Assembly: GCA_963514005.1 (NCBI GenBank)
Contig: OY740792.1
Coordinates: 42,718,001 to 42,782,000, forward strand
Source of the DNA: Raja brachyura
Lineage: Eukaryota
Length of the DNA stretch: 64,000 nucleotides
Direction: 5' to 3'
Below, piece after piece: positions 16,991 to 58,306 of the stretch. Numbering within the stretch: the first letter of the stretch is position 1; every line of letters starts with the position of its first letter. The position numbers and the translations under genes were made by a program. The notes below the pieces were generated by a model, which worked only from the letters and a program-made list of their open reading frames with translations, did no database searches and had not been told where the DNA came from.

Positions 16991-17054
16991 ATGTTTTGGT
17001 TGACATTGATGAAGATAATGAAAGCTTCTGCCATTTACATCATGTATCTGCCTG
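16991..17054 (+). CDS. Leader (signal peptide) exon of TIGIT-like receptor
   Basis: AAAATG start; MFWLTLMKIMKASAIYIMYLP+G; 64 nt ending in a consensus phase-1 donor CTG|GTAAGT, compatible with the phase-1 IgV exon. A possible acceptor (ttattttctacag) ends at 16961, so an upstream 5'UTR exon may exist. Confidence 0.7.
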
Positions 17055-20000
17055 GTAAGTACAATCCTACATTAAAACAGATGATTTGTATTACAGCAAT
17101 ATTGTGAATAAGTAACAAATGCACTACAAATGACACAACGCACTGGAGCAATTCAGCAGGTTAGGCAGCATTGCTGGAGAATATTGACAGGTGAAGTTTC
17201 TGGTCAGGACCCTTCTTCAGATCTGAAAAGTCACCTGTTCATGTTCTCCAGAGATGCTGCCTGACCTGCTGAGTTAGTCCAGCACTTTGTGGGCATTTGT
17301 GTATTAACCAGCATCTGCAGTTCTTTGTTTCTACGAACGCAGTACAAAATTATTTTACTGGCAACTTTTTAATTATTTTACAACTGTAAGTAGTTTATGC
17401 GAAGGCATTTACTTTATGGCCTCATTTAGTGCAAAGTTAATGTGGTAATGTAATGGTAGATTAAACAATTTAACTATTAATTGTTCAGCAGGGAGAACAA
17501 AAATCATGTTTATGCGAGATTGTTGCCAAAGATTGAGGTCGTCATGCACATATTTGGGAAATGTGATTACAGAATTTACTACTATTTCTGGAATTAAAAT
17601 CTTGTCAGGAAAGTTTAAATGTAAATGTTATTTAAATAAGTCGTCTACTGATATTCTGAAGGATGGTAATCTGCCTGATTTAACTGGCCCGGAATATGTG
17701 TGACTCCTGGCCCATAATACTAGCAATGTTACAAAATTTTGAGATTTTAAAAATCAAGTCTGCAATTTATCCCATCAGATAAAGCATAAGAAGTTTAATT
17801 TGACACCTAATTTACTTTCATATCTTCAGTATTAAGAAAGTTATGGCCATTTTCATACTCGGAAATGAGCATCTTGCTTCCCATTGCCTTTCAATTGACT
17901 TAACTCAAAAGCTGTGATCTGGAAAAGTTAAATGTCCATAACATTCTTAAAAATTAAGAGAACTCAATGAAATTTTCAGTTATTATAGATTGAAGCATTC
18001 TGAAACAAATATTAAACAATCTTACTTGGATTACCTGAAATTAAAGCATATAATTAGTTAGTTATCTAATTGTAGCTAATTACAAAATTCAATGAGTAGA
18101 TCTAAACATCTATCAATTTCTTAAGAAAAGATAAACTTTTTTTAAATTGCCTAAGTGTCCAAATAACATTCACACAATAATCCACAATATAACATAATTT
18201 TTAAATCTCATTTTCATGAATTTCTGGGCCAAATGGAAGGAATTTAGTGTTTTATGCCTGTAAATTAATGGCCATTTAAATCAACTAGCGAGTGGGTTTT
18301 AGTGGAATGCGGTGGATTGGAACGTTGCGGTTAGCGGTGAAGTCGGGGGGAAAAATACTGGGGGTTCATACATTTTTTGGGGAACCCATTTCGCAACATA
18401 AAAATATTATTAATGCCTCCCGAAAAACCAACTTTTAATATAAAAATAAAGTATTTACCTTTTTTTCTCCCCTACGCAAAATGCTTCCGGTTGTCTGCGG
18501 TCACGGCTTTTGAAGGTGATTTTTAAATTACTCTAGTTAATAAATAATCTAGAGTAATTTAAAAATACCACCATTCATTAAATGTCGGAGCGATTTTTCT
18601 TCAGCAACCAAATCACCCGACATTCATCGATTATCCAGGCCTGTGGAAAAACGGCACTTTAAGCCCGCCCCCCTCTGCAAGGCGCGAAAGTCGCGCACAC
18701 GGGGAGCGGCAGAAGTGCAGCGCCGCTAAAGGTAAGTTTTGTAACATACCTAATAATACGATCAGCACTTCTAAATGGTTTAGAAAGCTATTGAGTTCAG
18801 GGGGAAATTAGACACCAGCTTCACCAGTGACACCTGCATCCTATCAAGGACGGCACAGTGGCGCAGCAGTAGAGTTGCTGCTTGACAGCGTTCTCCAAGT
18901 GACCGCGTGGATCTTCTCCGTGTGTTCGGGTTTCCTCCCACATTCCAAAGACGTGCAGGTTTATAAGTTAATCGGCTTCAGTAAATTATCCCTAGTGTGT
19001 TGGATAGTTCTAGTGTGCAGGTGATCGCTGGTCGGTGTGGACTCGGTGGGCTGAAGGGCCTGTTTTCATGCTGTATTTCTAAAGTCGAAAGTAAAGTCTA
19101 ATGCCCCTGTCCCACTTAGGAAACCTGAACAGAAATCTCTGGAGACTTTGCGCCCCCACCCAAGGTTTCCGTGCGGTTCCCGGAGGTTTTTGTCAGTCTC
19201 CCTAACGGTCGAAAGTGGTTTCCGCTTCTTCTATGTTCCGGCGATTATTTCAAAAAATTGTAAAAACCTCCGGGAACCTGACAAAAACCTCCTGGAACCT
19301 CCGGGAACCGCACGGAAACCTCCTGGAACCACAGGGAACCTGACAAAAACCTCCTGGAACCTCCGGGAACCGCACGGAAACCTCCTGGAACCACCGGGAA
19401 CCTGACAAAAACCTCCTGGAACCTCCGGGAACCGCACCGAAACCTTGGGTGGGGCGCAAAGTCTCCAGAGGTTTCCGTTCAGGGTTTCCTAAGTGGGACA
19501 GGGGCATAAAGAATATACACTCATATCCGGCCATTTCTTTGGCAATGTGGCAAACAGCATTAAATTCAGTTATGCTTTTCATCGGTGATTTTTATATCTT
19601 TCATTCCCTTTAGTTCATCATAGAAACATAGAAACATAGAAATTAGGTGCAGGAGTAGGCCATTCGGCCCTTCGAGCCTGCACCGCCATTCAATATGATC
19701 ATGGCTGATCATCCAACTCAGTATCCCGTACCTGCCTTCTCTCCATACCCTCTGATCCCCTTAGCCACAAGGGCCACATCTAACTCCCTCTTAAATATAG
19801 CATCTGTAGTAATCATCTCTAGTAATAACCCCATTATTATCTTTATTTTAGTTTAGTTTAGCTTAGAGATACGAGTGGAAACAGGACCTTTGGCCCGCTG
19901 AGTCCACTCTGGCCTATGATCCCTGCACACTAACACTATTCTACACACACTAGGGACAATTTAACCAACTCAATTAGTCTACAAACCTGTGCATCGTTGA

Positions 20001-23000
20001 AGCGTTGGAGGAATACGGAGCACCTGGAGATAAAACGCGCAGGTCACGGGGAGAACATATAAACTCCGTGCAGACAGCACCCATAGTTAGGATCTCCTCT
20101 TTTACCACCCTTTTATTTAATTTCTCTTTTTATCGAGCTGTTTCACTAAAGAACACCATCAGAATTGATGATTTAATAATTATCCTTTTATGATAAACTC
20201 AGAAGAAATAAAAACGTGGAGAAGAAGAGAATGAAGATCAGCATCTCAAGCTTTTTCTGCCATTCAGTAATGTGTCTATGCCTATCTTATCCACCCAGTT
20301 TGGCCTCATATCTCTCAATGGTTGAGGGGAAATAAAGTTGAGCTCCAGAGGCAATACTCAGCTACTGAGGGAGTTCTGTTTTCCATGAACTCTGCAGCTC
20401 CGGAGGATTAAACTGAGAAATGTTGTGAGGATTATTTTGAGGATAGAAGAGTGAGAGGGGATCTTATTGAAACCTACTGGATAACGAAAATCCTAGATAG
20501 AATGGGTGTGGAAAGGATGTTTCCAGTAGTGGGAGAGTCTAGAACCAGAGGGCACACCCTCAAAATAAAAGGATGTACATTTAGAATGGAGATGAGGAGG
20601 AATTTCTATAGTGAGAGGGGAATCTGTGGAATTGATTGCCACAGACGGCTGTGGAAACCAAGTCATTGGGTTTATTTGAAACGGAGATTGATAGGGTAGA
20701 CTTTAGACTTTAGAGATACACTACAGAAACAGGCCCTTCAGCCTACCGTGTCAACACTGACCAGTGTTCATCCCTACACTAATGCCCCTGTCCCACTTAG
20801 AAAACCTGAACAGAAACCTCTGGAGACTTTGCGCCCCACCCAAGGTTTCCGTGCGGTTCCTGGAGGTTTTTGTCAGTCTCCCTAATGGTCGAAAGTGGTT
20901 TCTGTTTTAAAAATCGGTAATTTTTTAGTCGAAAGCCAGTTGCGATGCTAGTTGAAGGTGGTTGCCGGAGGACAAAAACCTCGGGGTTCAGGTTTCCTAA
21001 GTGCACACACCAGGGACTATTTTTTTTTCGACTTACTGAAGCCAATTAACCTAGAAACCTGTATGTGTTTGGAGTGTGGGAGGAAACCACAGTACCTGGA
21101 GAAAACTCCAGTCACAGGAAGCCATTTATACTCCGTACAGACAGCACCCGCAGTCAGGATCAAACCCGGGTCTCTGGCGCAGTTAGGCACAAAATCTACC
21201 GTTGCACCACCTTGCCACTTGTAGGTTCTTGATTAGTACGGGAGTCAAAGATTATGGGGAGAACGTTGGAGAATGGGGTTGAGAGGGAAAGATAGGTCAG
21301 CCATGATTGAATGGTGGAGCAGACTCAATGGGCTGAATGGCCTAATTCTGCTCCTATGTCTTATTGTCTTATGGTCTTATTGTCTCAAAGGTTTAGTGAA
21401 ATTAGAGGCCAAGTAACAAATACTTTTCAGAGAAGTTACATTGAGATTGAGGGAGGACTGAATACTTTGTCAAAAGGCCATAATCTTGTGTTTGGAGACA
21501 TTAAAATTGAAGTGAACATAATACTAGGCAGGGCAATGGAGCCAGAGTAAGTAATTTGAAATTAATTAATAAGATGGATGAAGTTTGTGTGAACAGAACA
21601 AAACCAATAAATGACTAACAAATGCAAATAAGAGGAGGAAAAAGGAAAGCAGAAGACGTTCGATTGCCAAGAGATCGAGAGATCTCAAGAGTTTGGAGAT
21701 GGGTCCTAATCTGAAACGTCACATGTCCATGTTCTCCAGAGATGTTGCCTGACCCTCTGAGTTGGGTCCATTGAGCACTTTGTGTCTATCGGGAGATCTT
21801 ACTAGACATCAACCAACGTCTTCCATCTTACAGCCATGCCCAAATAATCACAGTCAGCAGAGACCAATCACAATAACAATCTATGCTTAGCTTCAACTTT
21901 TAATGTAGTAAAATGTCCTCAGGCCTTGAACAAAACAAAAGCATAACTGCATGCAAAGTAAAGGCATTTAAGAGACTTTTAGATAGGCACATGTGTATGC
22001 AGGGAATGGAGGGATATGTGTCATGTTTAGGTGGCGGGGGGATTTGTTTATCTTGACATCATAGTCGGCATGGACATTGTGGGCTGAAGAGGCTTCCTGT
22101 GTGGTGTTGTTCTATGTGTAGGAAGGAACTGCAGATGCTGGTTTAAACCAGATAGACACAAAGTGCTGGAGTAACTCAGTGGGACAGGCAGCATCTCTGG
22201 AGAGAAGGATTGAGTAACATCACCCATTCCTTCTCTCCAGAGATGCTGCCTGTCCCACTGAGTTACTCCAGCATTTTGTGTCTATCTTTGGTACTGTTGT
22301 ATATTCTATGTAACGATAGATGAGATAGAAGAAAAAAAAAGAAAAAGAGGTAAATGGACAGAACTAATTTAAGATTAAACATTTAAGTTAATAATAAATT
22401 AAATAGCTAAAAAAAGGTAAAGAAAAAATAGGTAAAGAAAGAGCCTGGCCAAACTGTAATGTGATTTTTTACATATAAATGTCCAATTTAAGTAGTTGCA
22501 TGTTAATGGTTCTATTCTTGCTGACCACAAGTCACAAGCACAAATCTACAAAAAATAACCAGTTAGTTTGGGGTTTTTCAGTCTAAACTAAACATGTAGA
22601 AATGGTGATCTTAAAAAAGACATGTCAGATAATTTGAAAGATAAACAAGGCATATGCAGACCGCAAGAGACTGCAGAAGCTAGAACCTGGAGCAACAAAA
22701 TTAGCTGTGGGAACAATGTCTTCAAGCGATATTAAGAGGCAAAATACCAAATAGTCAGTCAAAATAGTAAAAGTTCAGTTCAGAATAAATGGCAAGAAAC
22801 AATACTTCATGCAGAGAGTGATACAAAATTGAATATATGTAGACTTAGAAGCTTAATGATTGTTCTTGAATAGCAGTATGAAGGCAGATGGACAATGAGG
22901 AGCACTTGGTGCAGCAGTAGAGTTGTAGCTTGCAGCACCAGTGACCCGGATTCGATCCTGACCACAGTGTGGTGTTTTTCTACACACCATGTGCAACGAA

Positions 23001-38000: not shown

Positions 38001-40585
38001 ATTTGGAATGTTCAAAATTCTGAAAGATTTTGATAGGGAAAGAGGAAAATCCCTCTTCAAAACAAAAGTATTGTTATCAAAAACAAATAGATTTAAAAAA
38101 CAATCAACCTGGGAAAAAACTATAGAGGACTTGGGTAAAACATTCAGTGTACACAGCACTGAAAGGATCATGGTTGCCAAGTGACATTCTCTTGTCATGG
38201 AGTTAAAAGACATCTCGACAGGTACACGGAAAGGCAAGGTTTAGAGGCATACGTGCAAGCACGGGCAGGTGGGACAAATAAAAGTGGGGCATCTTTCAAT
38301 CATTATCATCTGATTCAATTAGAGGAGTATATCACTCCCACCACTTCTGTTATAGTGAACATTAATCCCAACACATGTGCCATAGTGTATAACATTACTT
38401 CCATCATGTATGTGTTATAGTGCACATCACTTGTGTGTTACAGTGTGCAACATTTCTCCAATCACTTGTGTGCATTACTCCCACCAGTTGTGTGTTATAG
38501 TGAACAACACTCCCTCCCGCGAGTGAGCTATAGGGCACATTGCTCCCACTACTTGTGTGCTTTAGGGCACTACATTATTCCCATCATGGGCATGCGGTGC
38601 TGGCTCGAAGGGCCGAATGGCCTACTCCTGCACCTATTGTCTATCATGTGTGTGCCAGAGTGGACATTACTCCCACTACTTGTGTGCTGCAGTGGGCAAC
38701 ATTATTCCCATCACTTGTGTGTTAAAGTGCGCATTTCTCCCATTGGGCACATTACCTCCATCACATGTGTGCTATAGTGCCCAACATCACCCCCCATCTA
38801 AAGTAAAAATGATTCCATATTTACAGTATACCTCCATGTTTTAATGTGGCCATTAGTATGATCCTAACAGTTCTATTGGGGCAGCTAAACACAACTTCAG
38901 AAAACAGATCCCATCTGATTAAATGGTGATGTTTCATTAAAATAATCTCATTCATGCATGTTTTACTTAAAATACATGAGATAGATTATGGTCAGTGTAA
39001 CATTTGCTTTAGGTTGCACACACACACAAATCCCAGTTCTTGTACACATGTGAATCTATTGCTAATTCAGGTAGCTTTAGCACATCATGGCATGAGTACT
39101 TAAACTTTAGACTTTCAATTTTAGAGATAGAGCATGTAAACAGGCCCTACGGCCCACTGGGTCCGCACCAACCAATGATCACCCCGTACACTAGCACTAT
39201 CCTACATACTAGGGACAACTTACAATTTAACCAAAGCCAATTAACTTACAAACCTGTATGTCTTTTGGGAGGAAAGGTGGGAAGAAACCGGAGCATCCGG
39301 AGAAAAGTCATGCGGCCACAGGGAGAATGTACAAACTCCATACAGACAGGATTGAACCCAGGTCTCTGGCACTGTAAGGCAGCAATTAGGCCACTGTGCC
39401 ACACAATGATCAACCTTTCCCAAAGATTTTTTGCCCATTATCAGATACGGTTTCTTTACCTTAGCACCTGTGGTAGCCACACAGAGGTCAGCCTCACAGC
39501 AATCGAGAGTCTGTGTGTGCTTTCCCATTTAGAATGTGAAATCAGACCTCAGTATAATATAGAGACAAGGAACCACAGACGCTGGTTTACAAAAAAAGAC
39601 ACAAAGTACTGGAGTAAATCAGTGGGTCAGGCAGAATCCCGAAGAATATACACAGGTAACATTTCAGGTCGGAATCCTTCTTCAGACTCAAACTCAGATT
39701 CAGTCCAAAAAATGGTTTGAACCCAAAATGTCACCTATTCTTGTTCTCCAAGGATGTTGCCTGACCCGCTGAGTTACTCCAGCACTTTGTGTTTTTCTTT
39801 CACACCATAATATGATTGTTATTAAACATATTATTAGCTAAATCTGTCTAATTGCCAAACATAATATGGGCTCTCTGCTTGTTTCAAGGATCTGTTCAGC
39901 ACTTCAAACCTTATCAGTTTTACATTTGTGTTTTTGTTATAAATATGCTGAAAAACCAATGTAGTAGCTCTCTAATTTAAAGATGATCTCAGGCCTCCTT
40001 TCAGTATTGCATGACTAAGTTTGACATCATCCTGGACATTAATACACTTGTTATTGAATTATGCTACTCATGCATATGACATTTAGTCCTGTCTGTGAAA
40101 AGAGAAAGGACAAATAGACTGAAATTACATCATAGGATATTAGTAGAAGAATTCTTAATGAAGGTCTCAAACATATCTTCCTGCTATTTTAACAGGGATA
40201 TTAAACTATTTATCTCATTGCATAAATTAGCGCCATTGATTTCTCATAATCTTTGCCATATCTAAAAGTAATGACGCTTAAAAATAACTTAAAATGGCAA
40301 ATTTAGATGAGTTCTTATGCTTGCAGCTCTAAGAAAACTGTTGTCAGTGCAGAACATGATATTTGGTACTTGAATTAATAGCTGACACAGGTCACCTTGC
40401 CAGCTAGTTATGTGGCACAACCAAATGGAGGAGAGTTAAAGGTGTCTGTACAGTTACAGCATATTCTGCTGTGTTCCTCTCTGATGCTGTAGCAAATTTA
40501 CAATTAAGAACGATGAAGAATTTTGGTAAGCTGTTGTCACATTTTCATACGAGATGATGCCAAAAATGTTATTCTTCACTTTAAT

Positions 40586-40627
<42 letters not shown>

Positions 40628-43600
40628 GTCACGTGTACCGAGGTACAGTGAAACGCTCTTGGTGCGTGTTAACCAGTCAGCGGAAAGACAATACGTGATT
40701 ACAATTGAGTCATCCACAGTGTACAGATACATGATAAAGGGTATAACGGGAAAGGGGAATGATAAAAGGTGGTGAATCTGTGGAATTCATGGACACAGAC
40801 GGCTGTGGGGGTCAAGTCATTGGGTCTTTTTAAAGCGGAGATTGATAGGTTCTTGATTAGGAACGGCATCAATGGTTCCGGTGAGAAGGCAGGAAAGTGG
40901 CATTGAGAGGGAAAAATAGATCAGTCATGATCGAATGGCGGAGCAGACTCGATGGCCCTAATGACCTAATTCTGCTTATGGAAATAATTAGGATTTTTTT
41001 GTTGAAGGTTTGCAATCCATGCAGGATGTTTCTGCAGTGGGCTCCATAACAGCCTTGATTTTGTATGTGATCCAACAGCCTTTGTCATTGGCAAAGTGCA
41101 TAATTGGTAAGAGATTTTTGGGGTTTATCAGCAGAGATTCATATAGATCAGGCTTCTGATCCCATGTTTAACTCCTGAAGGTATATCTGTGATAGGCACA
41201 AAATGCTGGGGCAACTCAATGGATCAAGCAGCATCCCCAGATAAAATAATTGGTGATGTTTGTGGTTGGAACCCCTCTGCAGACTTCTTTGGTCTGAAGA
41301 AGGGTTCAACCTGAAACATTACCTTTACTTTTTCTCCGGAGATATTGTCTGATCCGCTGAGTTACTCCAGCGTTTTGTGTCTATCTTCGCTACAAACCAG
41401 CATCTGCAGTTCCTTCCAACACAGTAAATCTGTGAGCTGGTGAAACCAAAGATTGCTCTTCAGACCAAGTGAAGACTGCTAAATGATATACACAGACAAC
41501 AAATCAGGACTTTAAACAAAGGGATATAATTCAATTTTATATTACTGCACAGGGGGAGGTTGAGGTCACGCTCTGGCGAGGAGAAAAAATCATTTTTTTT
41601 TAATGCAACTTAATTTTCTTCTGATCAATACTGGATTGATTATAAAAATGATAAGGGGGTGCATATAGTCATTTGAGGGTTGATGAGAGCAATGTGGGGT
41701 ATAAGGATTTCCAGAGAATTTTATAAATTAGCACATAATTGAATTTATACCAGAATTCAAGTCCATAGAATGAAAGGGGTGCGATAAAAATGGACATCAA
41801 TTATACCATCCTTTTATGTGCCATTTATTACTAATTTAGATGGGCAGGGACATTCTAAAAGATGCAGATTCCGTAAAGCTGGAAGATGTAGTATATATAT
41901 TCACATTCATTAGGAATGGTAAAGCGACCATGGTTCAATATCAGGTTTAGCATCAATTCATTGGGGCGGCACAGTGGTGCAGCAGTAGAGTTGCTACTTC
42001 GCAGCACCAGAGACCCCAATTCGATCCTCACTGTGCTTGCTGTCTGTACGGATTAGTACATTCTCCCTGTGATCACATGGGTTTTCACCTGGTGCTCTGG
42101 TTATCCTCCCACATTCAAAAGATGTGCAGATTTGTAGGCTAATTGGCTTCTGTAAATTGCCCTTATTACGTCACATGGATAGCCTGGAGAAACTATGATT
42201 GATGACAGGCCAGCACGGTGGCACAGCGGTAGAATTGCTGCCTTACAGCGACAGAGACCCGGGTTCGACAATGGGTGACGTCTGTACGGCGTTTGTATGT
42301 TCTCCCTGTGTCCACATGGGTTTCCCCCAGGTGCTCCGGTTTCCTCACACATTCTAAAGAACTATATGTTTGTAAATTAATTGGGTTGGTAAAATTGCAA
42401 ATTGTTGTAGGACAGCACTATTGTAAGGGTGATTGCTGGTCGGCATGGACTCGGCAGGCCCGCAGTGTTTCTGCGCTGTATCTCTAAAGTCTAAAGTTGT
42501 TCTTGGGCCGACTAAGCTAAGAGGAAAGGGGGATGTAATAGAAGTGTTCAATATCATGAGGAGCCCAGTAAGAAACGTAGGAGTGAAATATTTTTTATTG
42601 GTAGTACCATAAGATCCAGGTCTAAATGATTGACAACGGAATGAGAACTCTCAGGAGGAAGAAGATATTGTTACACAGCGGATGGTTAGCATCTGGAACT
42701 TATCGCCTAACAGGCTGCTGGAGGAAGCACGAAATGTGATTTGCAAATGGGAAGTGGACCAGTTCTTGATGAATAGTCATTGTAATGCTACTAGGAAAGT
42801 GTGGGGTGGAATAGATAGATAGATAGACTGATAGATTGAATGAGTGATATTTTTGTCACGTGTACTGGTACAGTGAAATTACTTGCTTTGCATACAGTAG
42901 ACAAGAATGCAAAGAGACCCACGTGAAGGGCACTGACAAAGTATTCAATATAGTCCCCCTTCCTTCCCCCACCCCCCCCCCCCCCCCTCCCCCAGTCCCT
43001 CTTTGTTCTCGGTGCCCCCACCCCTCTCCCACACTGAGTTGCTGAGTTCCTCCTTGTTCAGTGGCACCTCCTCGGCCGACTGTCAGGACTCACGTGGACA
43101 ACGGCGCTCCGACATCCCTCCCCTCGTCAACCTCCCTCTCCCCACTCCAATGTCCCTCTCTCTCTCTGACATCCCTTTCCTCACTCCAACATCCTATCAC
43201 CAACCTCCCTTGCTCTCCGACATCCCTCTCCTCTCGCCAACGTCCCTCTCTCTCGCTGACGGCCCTCTTCCACGGACACCATCTAGGCCGAGTCCGGGTT
43301 GGCTCTGCGCCGGCGACCGAGCCAGGTCCTGGTTGGATCCACGGCAGAGGCCGGGTCACTCCAGCACAGCTGCGCAGCGCTCGTCAGGAAACTGGGATGC
43401 TTTTGTAGATAGGCGGCACAGATTTGGGGTAATTAATCTCCTAATACAGTGTACCATTTGCCTTGACTCTAAAACCCTACTCTTGTGATATTAATTTTTC
43501 TGTATTTTGCATTATCTACACTGTTAAGTTAATTCTCTAGACTTTGGACTTTAGAGATACAGCATGGAAACAGGCCCCTCGGCCCACCGATCACCCCATA

Positions 43601-45125
43601 CACCAGCACTATTACACACACTGGGAACAAATTACACTTTACAGAAGCCAATAAACCTACCATCCTGTACGTCTGTGGGAGGAAACCAGAGCACCTGGAG
43701 AATGCATGTGGTCACAGGGAGAATGTACAAATTCCAAACCCACAGCACCCGGAGCCAAGATCAAACCCATGTCTCTGGTGCTGAGGCAGCACCTCTACCG
43801 CTGCACCACTGTGCCACCCAAACTGTTAAAATATCCTTTTCTCCTGATTGCACTGATCCCAACTCTTCCCATTTAATAGTATTTTCACTCCAAGAACAAT
43901 CTCCCAAATTCATGCCAAACCAGTGAACTTTGTGCATCTCCCTTCAATGAAGACCAGAAGCTTGTGCCCTGAAGACCAACACTGGCAGAAAATACTGTAT
44001 CTGCAATTAATTGCAGTGTTTGTTGCCAGATCGCACTGGCAGTTTTAACTGAGAGAATTGACAGATATTCTGTTATCTGTGCAACAGAATTCAGACGGTT
44101 TCATGCAACATAATTGTTAAAAAATAAAATAATGAAACATACATTAGATGAACATTTCCAATTGTATATAATTAATATTTATCCTTGCTTCCAGAGGATG
44201 GCAAAATAGACATGCATTTCAAGGAGTAGATGTGAGATATCAGAAAAAAACATAAAGTTATGTAAGAAAATGAATTTACTATAATAGTGTCAGCATGTTC
44301 TATTTCTGACACTACTGTAAAGATTTGAAGACACAAAATGCTGGTGTAACTCAGAGGGACAGGCAACATCTCTGGAGAAATGGAATAGGTGATGTTTCTG
44401 GTCAAGACCTTTCTTCAGGCTGAGAGTCAGGGAAGAGGGATACTAGAGGTGTGAAAATGCTGGCACCGATGACTTAAGGAAGGTTGAGTCCATTATGGTC
44501 CATTGTTGGTGGTAGAAGAGGTGACAATGAAGGGATAAAAATCAGTGAAACCAGCAGGATGATTGGGGTGGGAGAGGGGTAGAGAGAGAGGGAATGCAAG
44601 GGCTATTTGAATTTAGAGATATCAATAGACGTACCGCTGGGTTGTAAGCTGCCCAAGCGAAATCTCTTTTTTGCTTCTTTCCTAAGTATTTACACTTTAA
44701 AGTATGTACTTTATTTTCACCTTCAGGCTTTTGGGTCTTGTGAATTTCCAGTCATACCAGTGTGTCTTGGATCCTGCCAGCCCTACTAACATTCTCTTTC
44801 TGTTTATTTCTCTTTTATTTGCTTCTCCTTCACTAATCTTTCCCAACTGTGCTGAATTTTCTTTACGGTTGCGTTTCCATGGACACCGGCTGTTCTAATT
44901 AACCCAGTGTAACCTCTGAGGCTTTATGTGCAGACATACATAATGCATCGCAGTGGACAATTCAAACAACAGCCACGATCGCCACATCGACCCATGTCCT
45001 TAAACAACCCCAAAACAAAAGCACTTTCCAAAGTAAAATCTACATAACAACCAAGAGACAGAAGAACATTTCTTTCCTCTAGCTCAGAGATTCTGAGCTA
45101 CACGTCACTGCTGTACCACCAGTAA
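16991..45125 (+). CDS. Multi-exon TIGIT-like (nectin/PVR-receptor family) single-IgV type I membrane immunoreceptor, ~211-222 aa
   Basis: Manually spliced GT-AG phase-1 exons give MFWLTLMKIMKASAIYIMYLP|GIQTKELERSEYVTAVKGSSAALHCAY...VEWEK...DNGGYTCIFHTFPDGKIEGKVYLDVN|GYDITTKHHLKRMILIYLA|VSIGVIAIIVAALIIWKLKRKSS|(DGSGSVRH)|DHGQNASKKPPIYENVDN|...ILSYTSLLYHQ*. Architecture is leader, V domain, stalk, TM, basic stop-transfer, YxN motif, ITIM. Orthology is not established and the 3' exons are less certain. Confidence 0.75.
17130..17335. mobile_element. Penelope-derived palindromic element
   Basis: Inverted arms around ccttcttcagatctgaa; ends ccagcatctgcagtt. Confidence 0.65.
17721..18752. mobile_element. 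Non-autonomous hAT-like DNA transposon with 7-bp TSD
   Basis: Termini tagcaatgttacaaaa / ttttgtaacataccta; ATAATAC duplicated at 17714-17720 and 18753-18759; related copy at 57863-58306. Confidence 0.85.
18850..19100 (+). mobile_element. HE1-like SINE (internally deleted)
   Basis: cggcacagtggcgcagcagtagag head, core and tail. Confidence 0.8.
19102..19506. mobile_element. PIF/Harbinger-like MITE with internal tandem repeats
   Basis: Long TIRs tgcccctgtcccacttaggaaacctgaac...; TAA TSD at 19099-19101 and 19507-19509; internal cctcctggaacctccgggaacc repeats. Confidence 0.85.
19618..19800 (-). mobile_element. CR1 LINE 3' tail (reverse)
   Basis: (catagaaa)n followed by attaggtgcaggagtaggccattcggcc; same as 24737-24920. 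Confidence 0.85.
20445..21380 (+). mobile_element. CR1 3' end with nested reverse SINE (~20697-21220) and MITE (20783-~21003)
   Basis: RGDLIETY..RTRGH; SINE tail tagactttagac; MITE left TIR tgcccctgtcccacttag after TAA, right TIR truncated. Confidence 0.8.
22118..22290. mobile_element. Penelope-derived palindromic element
   Basis: Near-perfect ~65-bp inverted arms (22151-22215 / 22225-22288). Confidence 0.7.
23305..24122 (+). mobile_element. GC-rich non-autonomous retroelement with Rex/L2-type tail
   Basis: Ends tcactgtacctt..tgcacgtgataataaa followed by (gaactt)n; shares ttcca(t/c)cacagtgagga and overall layout with 56320-56900. Confidence 0.5.
24737..26348 (-). mobile_element. CR1/HER1 LINE RT + 3' end
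   Basis: Track ORFs 25013..25780 (GAPQGSVLGPQLFTIYINDL, KFADDTKL) and 26055..26369 (NYRPVSLTSVVG); (tttctatg)-type tail. Confidence 0.95.
26350..26789. mobile_element. Truncated PIF/Harbinger-like MITE
   Basis: Right TIR gtgggacaggccca followed by TTA; internal segment 26350-26440 is the reverse complement of 59880-59946. Confidence 0.65.
27375..27640 (+). mobile_element. HE1-like SINE just upstream of the IgV exon acceptor
   Basis: gtggtgcagcagtagag A-box, ggttcaatcc B-box, core and tail. Confidence 0.85.
27692..28021 (+). CDS. IgV-domain exon of TIGIT-like receptor
   Basis: Acceptor tttttctttattcccccag, donor G|gtaatg, 330 nt, phase 1-1. Contains B-strand Cys (LHCAY), Trp 14 residues later (VEWEK), DxGxYxC (DNGGYTC), the T(F/Y)P motif (HTFPDG) and N-glycosylation sequons NRT and NAT. 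Overlaps track ORF 27736..28053. Confidence 0.95.
28858..28914 (+). CDS. Stalk / N-terminal part of TM exon
   Basis: Acceptor ttttttgttattaacag, donor CAG|gtgaga, 57 nt, phase 1-1; open frame GYDITTKHHLKRMILIYLA. Confidence 0.7.
29472..29540 (+). CDS. Transmembrane exon
   Basis: Acceptor cttcttattatttcaacag, donor CAG|gtgagt, 69 nt, phase 1-1; VSIGVIAIIVAALIIW followed by KLKRK stop-transfer. Confidence 0.85.
30110..31070 (-). mobile_element. CR1 LINE 3' portion nested in an older + strand CR1 (~29960-30100 and ~31075-31570)
   Basis: Track ORFs 30630..31067 (YINDL..KYADDTK) and 30177..30563; flanks encode the continuation GKLLEKILRDRI / SKSTGDSKI. Confidence 0.9.
31432..31457. repeat. (GT)n microsatellite
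   Basis: Direct inspection. Confidence 0.9.
32445..32680 (+). mobile_element. HE1-like SINE
   Basis: A/B-box head and core. Confidence 0.8.
33125..33420 (-). mobile_element. HE1-like SINE (reverse)
   Basis: (tttag)n tail followed by reverse-complement core and head. Confidence 0.8.
34210..34233 (+). CDS. Candidate 24-nt cytoplasmic micro-exon
   Basis: Long T tract + aaaaccag acceptor, ATG|gtaatg donor, phase 1-1, DGSGSVRH. Confidence 0.45.
34830..35318 (+). mobile_element. Rex1/Babar-like LINE 3' fragment
   Basis: KLQRIV..LPSI..IIKD..HPSNSLF..SGKR..TSRFRDSFF..IRQLN; tail aataaac(taac)n. Confidence 0.8.
36140..36450 (+). mobile_element. HE1-like SINE
   Basis: Head with gggttcggtcc B-box, core and tail. 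Confidence 0.85.
37321..37374 (+). CDS. Cytoplasmic exon with ITT-like IYENV motif
   Basis: Acceptor tatctctcaacag, donor ACA|gtaagt, 54 nt, phase 1-1, DHGQNASKKPPIYENVDN. Read-through gives SKFNKYQ* with stop at 37395-37397. Confidence 0.8.
38310..38790 (+). repeat. Degenerate ~31-32 bp minisatellite
   Basis: Recurring unit close to cacattactcccaccacttgtgtgttatagtg; interrupted by a ~55-bp CR1 tail piece at ~38585-38643. Confidence 0.75.
39105..39405 (-). mobile_element. HE1-like SINE (reverse)
   Basis: Reverse complement of SINE consensus. Confidence 0.8.
40493..40525 (+). CDS. Candidate 33-nt cytoplasmic exon
   Basis: Acceptor gttcctctctgatgctgtag, donor TTG|gtaagc, phase 1-1, TNLQLRTMKNF. 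Confidence 0.35.
40586..40626. repeat. (TTAG)n microsatellite at a reverse Rex-like tail
   Basis: Direct inspection. Confidence 0.9.
41965..42495 (+). mobile_element. Two tandem HE1-like SINEs
   Basis: Heads at ~41965 and ~42212. Confidence 0.8.
43540..43820 (-). mobile_element. HE1-like SINE (reverse)
   Basis: Reverse complement of SINE consensus. Confidence 0.75.
44328..44663 (-). mobile_element. Penelope-like element 3' end (GIY-YIG C-terminus + pseudo-LTR)
   Basis: Minus-strand FRLGSLQPSG, then pseudo-LTR with ctgaagaaagg..gaaac. Confidence 0.75.
45088..45125 (+). CDS. Candidate terminal exon with ITIM LSYTSL
   Basis: Pyrimidine tract atttctttcctctagctcag; phase-1 entry gives (K/E)ILSYTSLLYHQ*. 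LSYTSL fits the ITIM consensus and resembles human TIGIT LSYRSL. Requires use of the distal CAG rather than the TAG 5 nt upstream. Confidence 0.5.
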
Positions 45126-57862: not shown

Positions 57863-58306
57863 TAGGTATGTTACAAAACTTCCCTTCAGCGGCACTGCCA
57901 TTCTGCCACTGGCCGGGTGCACAACTTTGGAGCCTTTGAGGGGGGGCGGCAGGATTAAAATGCCGTTTTCTCCTGCCTGTCGGAGTCGATCTTTCTCAGC
58001 CTGTTCAGCTGCTGCAGAAAAATCACTCTGACATCCGTTCTCTGAAGTTTTTTAAAAACATCGTGTTTTTTAAAAACAAAGTTATGGGCTTTTGACTGTC
58101 CTTAATCACAGCTTTTGAGTTAAGTTAATGGAAAAGCAATAGGGTACAAGATGCTAATTTCCGAGTATGAAAATGGTCATAACTTTTTTAATACTGAATA
58201 TATGAAAGTGAATTAGGTGTCAAATTAAACTTCTTTTTATGCTTTATCTGATGGGATAAAGTGCAGACTTGATTTTTATAAAATCTCAAAATTTGTAACA
58301 TTGCTA
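57863..58306. mobile_element. hAT-like non-autonomous DNA transposon (deletion derivative of 17721-18752, opposite orientation)
   Basis: Termini taggtatgttacaaaa / tttgtaacattgcta; CTCATAG duplicated at 57856-57862 and 58307-58313. Confidence 0.85.

Follow-up and report, generated by a model that had tools for sequence, protein, structure and literature searches.

Drug development has a major target in the TIGIT/CD226 axis, and its origin is poorly described. A survey from 2026 lists CD96, CD226 and TIGIT as amniote-restricted (PMC13262535), a nectin-family study leaves these three genes untreated, and no paper describing TIGIT in cartilaginous fish was found. A stretch of 64,000 nucleotides from the skate Raja brachyura (assembly GCA_963514005.1, contig OY740792.1, positions 42,718,001 to 42,782,000 of the forward strand), referred to here as the window, raises the question of whether a TIGIT gene is present in these animals and, if so, which member of the family it is. 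A preliminary description of this DNA had proposed a TIGIT orthologue, an inhibitory receptor hidden in transposon-rich introns.

In short, the window contains an intact-looking immune-receptor gene of the TIGIT family, and this gene is a new member of a subfamily that is annotated but undescribed, not the TIGIT orthologue. The family is split into two gene types in cartilaginous fishes, here called type A and type B, and homology identifies the window gene as a predicted skate type-A TIGIT-like gene, a paralogue of type B. We consider it roughly 60% probable that this is the skate copy of an old TIGIT-like type A which forms a tandem paired receptor with type B, and that the V exons of the two have been converted.

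Gene model and immunoglobulin domain

Where up to eight exons had been proposed, five can be traced, and four of these have homology support. The exons are as follows (a slash marks the splice border; IgV, immunoglobulin V-set domain; TM, transmembrane; ITT, immunoglobulin tail tyrosine):

Exon 1, 16991-17054, + strand: start codon, leader MFWLTLMKIMKASAIYIMYLP and the first base of a Gly codon; donor G/GTAAGT, phase 1.
Exon 2, 27692-28021, + strand: IgV, 109 in-frame codons (27694-28020); acceptor CCCCCAG/GT, donor G/GTAATG.
Exon 3, 29421-29540, + strand: short stalk, TM helix and basic anchor, G-NCSIILQQLVLLIISTVSIGVIAIIVAALIIWKLKRKSS; acceptor AAATAG/GG (weak), donor CAG/GTGAGT.
Exon 4, 37321-37374, + strand: cytoplasmic D-HGQNASKKPPIYENVDN with a Y-x-N tyrosine (Grb2-type, ITT-like); acceptor CAACAG/AC, donor ACA/GTAAGT.
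Exon 5, candidate and unproven, 45088-45125, + strand: K-ILSYTSLLYHQ-stop (TAA at 45123-45125); acceptor TTTCCTCTAGCTCAG/AG.

Direct reading of the + strand gives AG...GT borders and phase 1 for all five traced exons. The earlier claim of GT-AG exons joined in phase 1 therefore stands for these five, with the reservations that the phase-1 acceptor of exon 3 is weak and that exon 5 is at chance level. The peptides on which the preliminary description was built were all recovered on the + strand, namely YTCIFHTFPDG at 27955, KLKRK at 29519, IYENV at 37353 and LSYTSL at 45093. A splice-score scan for further phase-1 exons, as an eight-exon model would need, returned many candidates per intron, none of which matched any homologue. 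Homology searches were run exon by exon. Exons 1 to 4 contain about 188 homology-supported codons, all of them open. Self-repeat makes up 35% of the window, but each of the five exons falls in sequence that is unique there. Contigs of the DNA run X5 match 27616-29748 with 0-1 differences, and since they are almost letter-for-letter identical, this segment is not an assembly slip.

The start of exon 3 can be drawn in two ways. A stronger-looking acceptor, ACAG/CAA at 29443, is in phase 0 and would need the poor donor AAT/GTTTTA at 28026. We favour the acceptor at 29421, since seven codons just before 29443 can be aligned to the stalk of the Chiloscyllium relative: the tblastn match of that protein to exon 3 takes in the stalk NDSIMLKDL versus NCSIILQQL, upstream of the ACAG acceptor.

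Exon 2 encodes a V-set domain (Pfam PF07686, E 4e-12) with the hallmarks Cys24, Trp38 and D84-x-G-x-Y88-x-C90 and with the 'key' motif HTFPDG. The Cys-to-Trp spacing of 14 in human TIGIT recurs here, from Cys24 to Trp38, in the PDB alignment. The statement that no second Ig exon is present also held, as tblastn of 170 Ig proteins over the whole window gave one Ig exon only. Among all PDB chains, the top phmmer match is human TIGIT (E 1.3e-8), followed by nectin-1 (1.1e-7) and CD226. With a profile of chondrichthyan V domains searched against PDB the lead of TIGIT grew, with TIGIT at 1.4e-14, CD226 at 2e-12, nectin-1 at 7e-12 and CD96 at 5e-8. The proposed TIGIT/PVR-like receptor, with a single IgV, a TM segment and a tyrosine motif, is thus present, and human TIGIT is its top solved relative. 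An AlphaFold2 model of the V domain from a 16-row alignment is all-beta, and its predicted local distance difference test score of 55.8 makes it too uncertain to use.

Two gene types sharing one V domain

Relatives of the window gene are held in RefSeq for at least 13 elasmobranch species (seven sharks, five batoids), mostly as 'TIGIT-like' and in some cases as 'CD226 antigen-like' or 'nectin-1-like'; the elephant shark also has a relative, annotated as uncharacterised. It had been argued that an elasmobranch gene of this kind would date the checkpoint to the base of jawed vertebrates. The family is indeed present in cartilaginous fishes, namely in skates, rays, sharks and a chimaera, but its TIGIT-like genes are already labelled in RefSeq and are not new to databases. 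The shark gene family is known from automatic annotation only. Its proteins are of two types:

Type A, members: XP_067895990 of Heterodontus francisci (P0003), Carcharodon carcharias isoform X1 (P0157), XP_043557455 of Chiloscyllium plagiosum (P0009), and A0A4W3HS01 (P0030) and LOC103184848 (P0168) of Callorhinchus milii.
Type A, layout: leader MFWL../..MKML.., IgV, short stalk, TM ending in WK(M/K/V)K(R/K)K, one or two P-x-Y-E-N-V-D-N units.
Type B, skates: XP_055500539/XP_055500538 of Leucoraja erinacea (P0001/P0151) and a Rhinoraja longicauda protein named 'nectin-1-like' (P0169).
Type B, others: Pristis, Hemitrygon, Mobula, Heterodontus (P0160), Carcharodon 'CD226 antigen-like' (P0161), Mustelus, two Scyliorhinus and Heptranchias.
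Type B, layout: leader MIR..LLIV(S/T)G, IgV, TM ..GILFLLLYFGHRKRR, PNQIN(V/I) box, C-terminal (D/E/N)Y(F/M/L)(S/N/T)V.

Outside the V domain, the window exons match type A in tblastn searches. Exon 1 resembles the type-A leaders of Heterodontus (MFWLLAVMKML..., E 0.09) and Carcharodon (E 0.015) at the expected place upstream of V, and is unlike the type-B leader MIR..VCLLIVSG. Exon 3 matches the type-A tails of Carcharodon (E 4e-4), Heterodontus (5e-4) and Chiloscyllium (9e-4), versus E 14 for the type-B TM segment. Exon 4 matches the type-A YENV segments at E 0.012-0.15, including both YENVDN units of Carcharodon (0.012 and 0.029) and that of Chiloscyllium (0.039), and no Y-[EDAQ]-N-x motif other than that of exon 4 lies downstream of V on the + strand. 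Exons 1, 3 and 4 match type-A proteins collinearly and on the + strand, in the order leader-V-TM-YENV, and no exon for a type-B leader, TM or tail was found by tblastn anywhere in the 64-kb window. Because the type-A matches are in order and these type-B parts are missing, the window gene is assigned to type A.

The window gene shares with chondrichthyan type A the MFWL/..MKML..-type leader, the one IgV, the short stalk, the (I/L)WKxK(R/K)K anchor, the exon order and the cytoplasmic P-(I/L/F)-Y-E-N-V-(D/H)-N unit. It differs in that its V domain is only 48-52% identical to those of type A (52% to Heterodontus; 36% to the chimaera), in a stalk about 4-10 residues shorter, and in the possible extra LSYTSL exon, which is seen in no type-A homologue. 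In contrast, its V domain is close to those of type B in Leucoraja ('TIGIT-like X2', 86%) and Rhinoraja (83%), which are themselves 83.5% identical to each other, while the leader, TM, PNQINV box and C-terminal D-Y-F-(S/N)-V of type B are not encoded in the window.

This mosaic pattern of identity recurs within single shark species, as the following comparison summarises:

Type A versus type B of the same species (Heterodontus, Carcharodon): V 94.5-97.2%, leader 35-43%, post-V 22-25% identity.
Same type, between Heterodontus and Carcharodon: V about 70%, post-V about 65% identity.

The V-domain tree (maximum likelihood, 34 rows, LG+C20+F+G4) has the same outcome. All chondrichthyan type-A and type-B V domains form one clade (support 97/98), within which they pair by species and not by type, in Carcharodon with 100/97 and in Heterodontus with 94/87; the window V groups with the two skate type-B V domains at 100/99. 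Forcing the type-A V domains to be monophyletic costs 232 log-likelihood units and is rejected by the approximately unbiased (AU) test (p=4e-4; p=1e-5 without the chimaera). Types A and B lie on the same chromosome-size contig in Heterodontus, and likewise in Carcharodon. The AU rejection together with the within-species V identity suggests paired receptors with homogenised V exons. Both the V-domain homogenisation and the A/B pairing appear to be undescribed, and the window adds a skate type-A member that was not found annotated.

Some of the predicted proteins in these databases have features of their own. The type-A RefSeq models of Chiloscyllium (XP_043557455, residues 223-258) and Callorhinchus (LOC103184848, about 218-263) match, at their 3' ends, LINE (long interspersed nuclear element) reverse-transcriptase fragments that lie in the window at 10245-10823, 25592-25672, 30020-30109 and 30924-31010; both models probably run into a transposon and have a mis-annotated C-terminus. 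The predicted isoform X2 of Heterodontus (P0158) skips most of the V exon, and the predicted 'CD226 antigen-like X3' of Carcharodon (P0159) skips the TM segment, which would possibly give a soluble form. The two Leucoraja isoforms differ by a donor that lies 6 nt further on in P0151 than in P0001 (NGKDNK versus NDNK).

Several observations weigh against the reading of the window gene as a type-A partner in a converted pair. No type-A protein of a skate or ray surfaced in the protein database searches. The window has a single YENV unit versus two in tandem in Heterodontus and Carcharodon; the Chiloscyllium and Callorhinchus models have one unit each. The acceptor of exon 3 at 29421 has a poor pyrimidine tract and scores 10, versus 15-19 elsewhere. 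The within-species identity of the A and B V domains was measured in Heterodontus and Carcharodon, the type B of the window species not having been seen, and gene conversion of V exons is the homogenising process that we infer from proteins only.

The read evidence weighs in the same direction. A single search among runs turned up none recorded as RNA that contains the V exon. Read contigs from runs X1, X2, X3 and X5 were compared with 27300-29900. Those of X1 to X3, three small runs from another organism that are guessed to be RNA, match only from 27687/27691 to 28021/28025, at about 94% identity. A 508-nt contig of these runs extends 229 nt past the V exon with no match to the window TM exon; their depth is zero over 29388-29648, and no V-TM joint was seen. 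The match that reaches 28025 fits the Leucoraja isoform X1 with ..VNGKD... Since only the V exon is covered, the X1-X3 contigs come from another gene, or from DNA, and lend no support to the splice model of the window; type B is their most likely source, and they could be DNA. Between the window V and the X1-X3 contig, ten listed differences fall in nine codons, eight of which change the amino acid (among the changes are Y11S, K16E, Y26S, L27P, S41T, K46R and E67G), a pattern that suggests fast evolution of the V-domain protein between paralogues or species.

It is conceivable that these observations reflect a silent or decaying batoid copy of type A, either a pseudogene of recent origin or a relic without expression, with a V domain that only conversion has kept like type B. 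Such a copy would fit the lack of batoid type-A proteins, when type-B annotations exist for Leucoraja, Rhinoraja, Pristis, Hemitrygon and Mobula, as well as the weak acceptor, the one YENV unit, the X1-X3 contigs that never touch the TM exon, and the large share of amino-acid changes in the V codons. However, the four homology-supported exons are open over their whole length and have kept their phase-1 GT-AG borders, and conservation extends to the hallmark residues of the Ig domain, to the leader and to the WKLKRK anchor; missing annotation and three small runs of unknown tissue are weak evidence of decay. We regard a decaying copy as unlikely, though as a real rival.

Relation to TIGIT, the 3' end and the surrounding DNA

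The window V domain resembles that of TIGIT in several respects. As in human and other mammalian TIGIT (PDB 3UDW, 3UCR, 5V52), there is one PVR-like IgV with a Cys-Trp spacing of 14 and the motif YxCIxHT(F/Y)PDG, followed by a TM segment and a short tail with a Y-x-N-V tyrosine. In the best V-domain tree, the clade of TIGIT with chondrichthyan types A and B has a support of 66/92; this tree contains no curated CD96, PVRIG or CRTAM. The expected grouping of the window V with TIGIT, and not with nectin, CD226 or CD200, was therefore recovered, with moderate support only.

The motifs of the binding face are only partly conserved. The TIGIT 'key' T(F/Y)P and 'lock' AX6G motifs are defined in PMC9263721. 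The key, in the FG loop, is kept: the window HTFPDG aligns with human HTYPDG, and P96 is invariant in the V alignment. The lock is not kept, with human A67...G74 standing opposite window K46...A53. The (V/I)(S/T)Q motif, a part of the PVR-like interface, is not kept either, as human VTQ lies opposite window LVL. ITQ, VTQ or ILQ is retained in bony-fish and frog TIGIT and missing from all chondrichthyan type-A and type-B sequences aligned. As these two motifs are not kept, the mode of ligand binding may differ from that of TIGIT, which is a further point against the reading as a type-A partner in a converted pair.

It is the segment behind the V domain that separates the two types. Behind V, the TIGIT proteins of bowfin, gar, sturgeon and frog can be aligned to type B over 80-90 residues (for example, Hymenochirus versus Hemitrygon at E 1.7e-11 and Amia versus Mobula at E 6e-7), whereas bony-vertebrate TIGIT and the type-A tails match over only 21-30 hydrophobic TM residues. 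From skate type B through to frog TIGIT, the full-length alignment shows no change at one TM glycine or at the C-terminal tyrosine. The stalk, TM and tail of the window gene are not collinear with bony-vertebrate TIGIT and are without the terminal (D/E)YF(N/S)V. With regard to mammalian TIGIT, the window V is about 32% identical to that of the bat, the tail is not alignable, LVL replaces VTQ, the AX6G lock is absent, and the ITIM (immunoreceptor tyrosine-based inhibitory motif) is present as a candidate exon only. Because its stalk, TM and tail are collinear with bony-fish and frog TIGIT, and only the TM of type A is, type B is likely the better TIGIT orthologue of the two. The proposal that the window holds the true orthologue gives way here, as the skate, ray and shark type-B genes are better candidates located elsewhere.

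The inhibitory ITIM LSYTSL of the preliminary description fared no better. The string is present in the candidate exon 5, which lies 7.7 kb from exon 4, and this exon has no homologue and does not exceed chance. It is absent from all type-A homologues examined: the Carcharodon type A ends in ..YENVDNITNTKMEIRHAQ and that of Heterodontus in ..YENVDNK. Among the sequences collected, an ITIM after the C-terminal ITT-like motif occurs only in a mammal (bat, DYFNVLTYRSL), and in the proteins of fish and amphibians and in shark type B little follows (D/E)YFNV. Since the ITIM is confined to the mammal in this set, LSYTSL versus human LSYRSL is not an inherited feature, and the likeness is best explained by chance or convergence. 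To obtain the chance expectation, both strands of the window were scanned for AG acceptors at least as pyrimidine-rich as that at 45088, from which a phase-1 frame reaches an ITIM before a stop; about 0.6 such terminal exons are expected per 7.7 kb, which gives a probability of about 0.45 for one or more. Exon 5 may nevertheless be real. If the donor of exon 4 is unused, the frame reads on through SKFNKYQ (..YENVDNSKFNKYQ-stop) to a stop at 37395-37397, and two sites resembling poly(A) signals follow 245 and 322 nt beyond this stop. A repeat family on the minus strand, at 22048-22227 and 44172-44405, encodes ..EMLPVPLSY(S/T)S(T/I)LCL.., a transposon-borne ITIM-like string, so LSYxS-type motifs turn up easily in the window.

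An inhibitory elasmobranch TIGIT orthologue, with an ITT-like IYENV followed by the ITIM LSYTSL, is on this evidence improbable. It would accord with TIGIT as the top PDB match, with the single IgV and its HTFPDG key motif, with the Y-x-N-V motif, with a phase-1 acceptor that has a good pyrimidine tract before K-ILSYTSLLYHQ-stop, and with the 'TIGIT-like' names that NCBI gives to the shark relatives. But the collinearity through stalk, TM and tail belongs to type B and not to type A, a finding that had already weakened this reading; the window has no exon for a type-B TM or tail; and the candidate ITIM exon is found in no type-A homologue, follows a pattern that no collected fish, amphibian or shark type-B protein shows, and is easily matched by chance.

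That the five pieces are chance frames, scattered about an isolated Ig exon in DNA rich in repeats, is very improbable: much of the window is self-repeat, short exons are easily picked by eye and the fifth exon is at chance level, but one set of shark proteins is matched by the leader, the TM and the YENV exon alike, with order and strand preserved and with joint phase-1 borders, and all pieces lie in unique DNA, by which this account is effectively refuted for exons 1-4 and stands for exon 5 only.

As for the DNA around the gene, ten long open reading frames (ORFs) gave reverse-transcriptase matches only. With regard to synteny with ZBTB20 and DRD3, the neighbours of human TIGIT, the flanks within the window offer nothing but these fragments. 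LINE-type reverse-transcriptase ORF fragments lie at 25013-26369 (-), 30177-31067 (-), 10062-10526 (+) and 1775-2095 (+); two of them contain Pfam RVT_1, and the longest open piece, at 25013-25780, has 255 aa. Very high-copy short repeats adjoin the V and TM exons at 27365-27658, 28272-28461, 28617-28677 and 29721-29882, with a summed contig depth that reaches 10^5-10^6 in every run compared. Their copies translate to a '..GAVCTEF..SP.D..GF..' frame that is found across the window and look like SINEs (short interspersed nuclear elements); Rfam gave no match for these elements or for the window. Intron 1 contains a tandem array at 19265-19445, with a 62-nt unit in 2.9 copies, 96% matches and a 31-nt sub-period. 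Repeat copies at 17825-17857 (-) and 58166-58198 (+) translate to YENGHNF(L/F)NTE, a chance look-alike of shark YENVHNVPNTE; they were rejected as exons, being on opposite strands and outside the gene model.

Proposed signalling and significance

The window gene would encode a receptor about 200 residues long, a type I membrane protein composed of one PVR/nectin-family IgV, a very short stalk, an uncharged TM helix, the KLKRK anchor and a short tail in which P-I-Y-E-N-V would be the single homology-supported signalling element. The TM helix is without a charged residue, so there is no sign of coupling to DAP12 or FcR-gamma. We infer that the gene is expressed and that its ligand is nectin/PVR-like: ligation would be followed by phosphorylation of PIYENV by Src-family kinases and by recruitment of Grb2-type adaptors. 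In CD226, the tail motif (D/E)IY(V/M)NY binds Grb2 via its +2 asparagine and activates, and Y225 in TIGIT's ITT-like motif also recruits Grb2, with an inhibitory outcome (PMC9263721). A Y-x-N motif by itself would not determine the sign of the signal, which could be activating as in CD226 or else inhibitory, the latter only with use of the unproven LSYTSL exon.

CD226 (DNAM-1), which shares a ligand with TIGIT and acts in opposition to it, is the other mammalian receptor with which the window gene can be compared. It has a PVR-family V domain, is the second PDB family in the profile search, and its tyrosine/asparagine motif resembles P-I-Y-E-N-V of the window. It differs in having two Ig domains versus one, and there is no homology of the tails beyond the motif. 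The CD226/TIGIT pair of mammals also differs from A and B in that it has no shared homogenised V domain.

SIRP alpha/beta, KIR, PIR and CD300 are among the paired immune receptors whose ectodomains have undergone conversion. Types A and B resemble these classical pairs in a near-identical ligand-binding domain, unrelated signalling ends and neighbouring genes, and differ from them in the TM segment, where activating partners have a charged residue for DAP12 or FcR-gamma and A and B have none. In the paired-receptor reading, which we prefer, A and B would be two old linked tandem paralogues whose V exons have been repeatedly homogenised by gene conversion; both would recognise one nectin/PVR-like ligand but signal differently. 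Tentatively, and with slightly less than an even chance of being right, it can further be proposed that the two genes constitute a nectin/PVR checkpoint module older than the shark-chimaera split, with a converted V domain, a TIGIT-like tail in B and a CD226-like tail in A, to which the skate type A may have added a convergent ITIM exon.

For the window itself, an over-reading has been corrected: the gene is a paralogue, and its inhibitory motif is a candidate only. The less obvious aspect of the family is that it comprises a pair of genes in which a common, homogenised binding domain is joined to signalling tails that differ. If this is true, the ITIM of mammalian TIGIT would be a late addition, and the cartilaginous fishes would offer a simple natural system for studying the evolution, prior to the divergence of CD226 and TIGIT, of opposite signals elicited by a single ligand.

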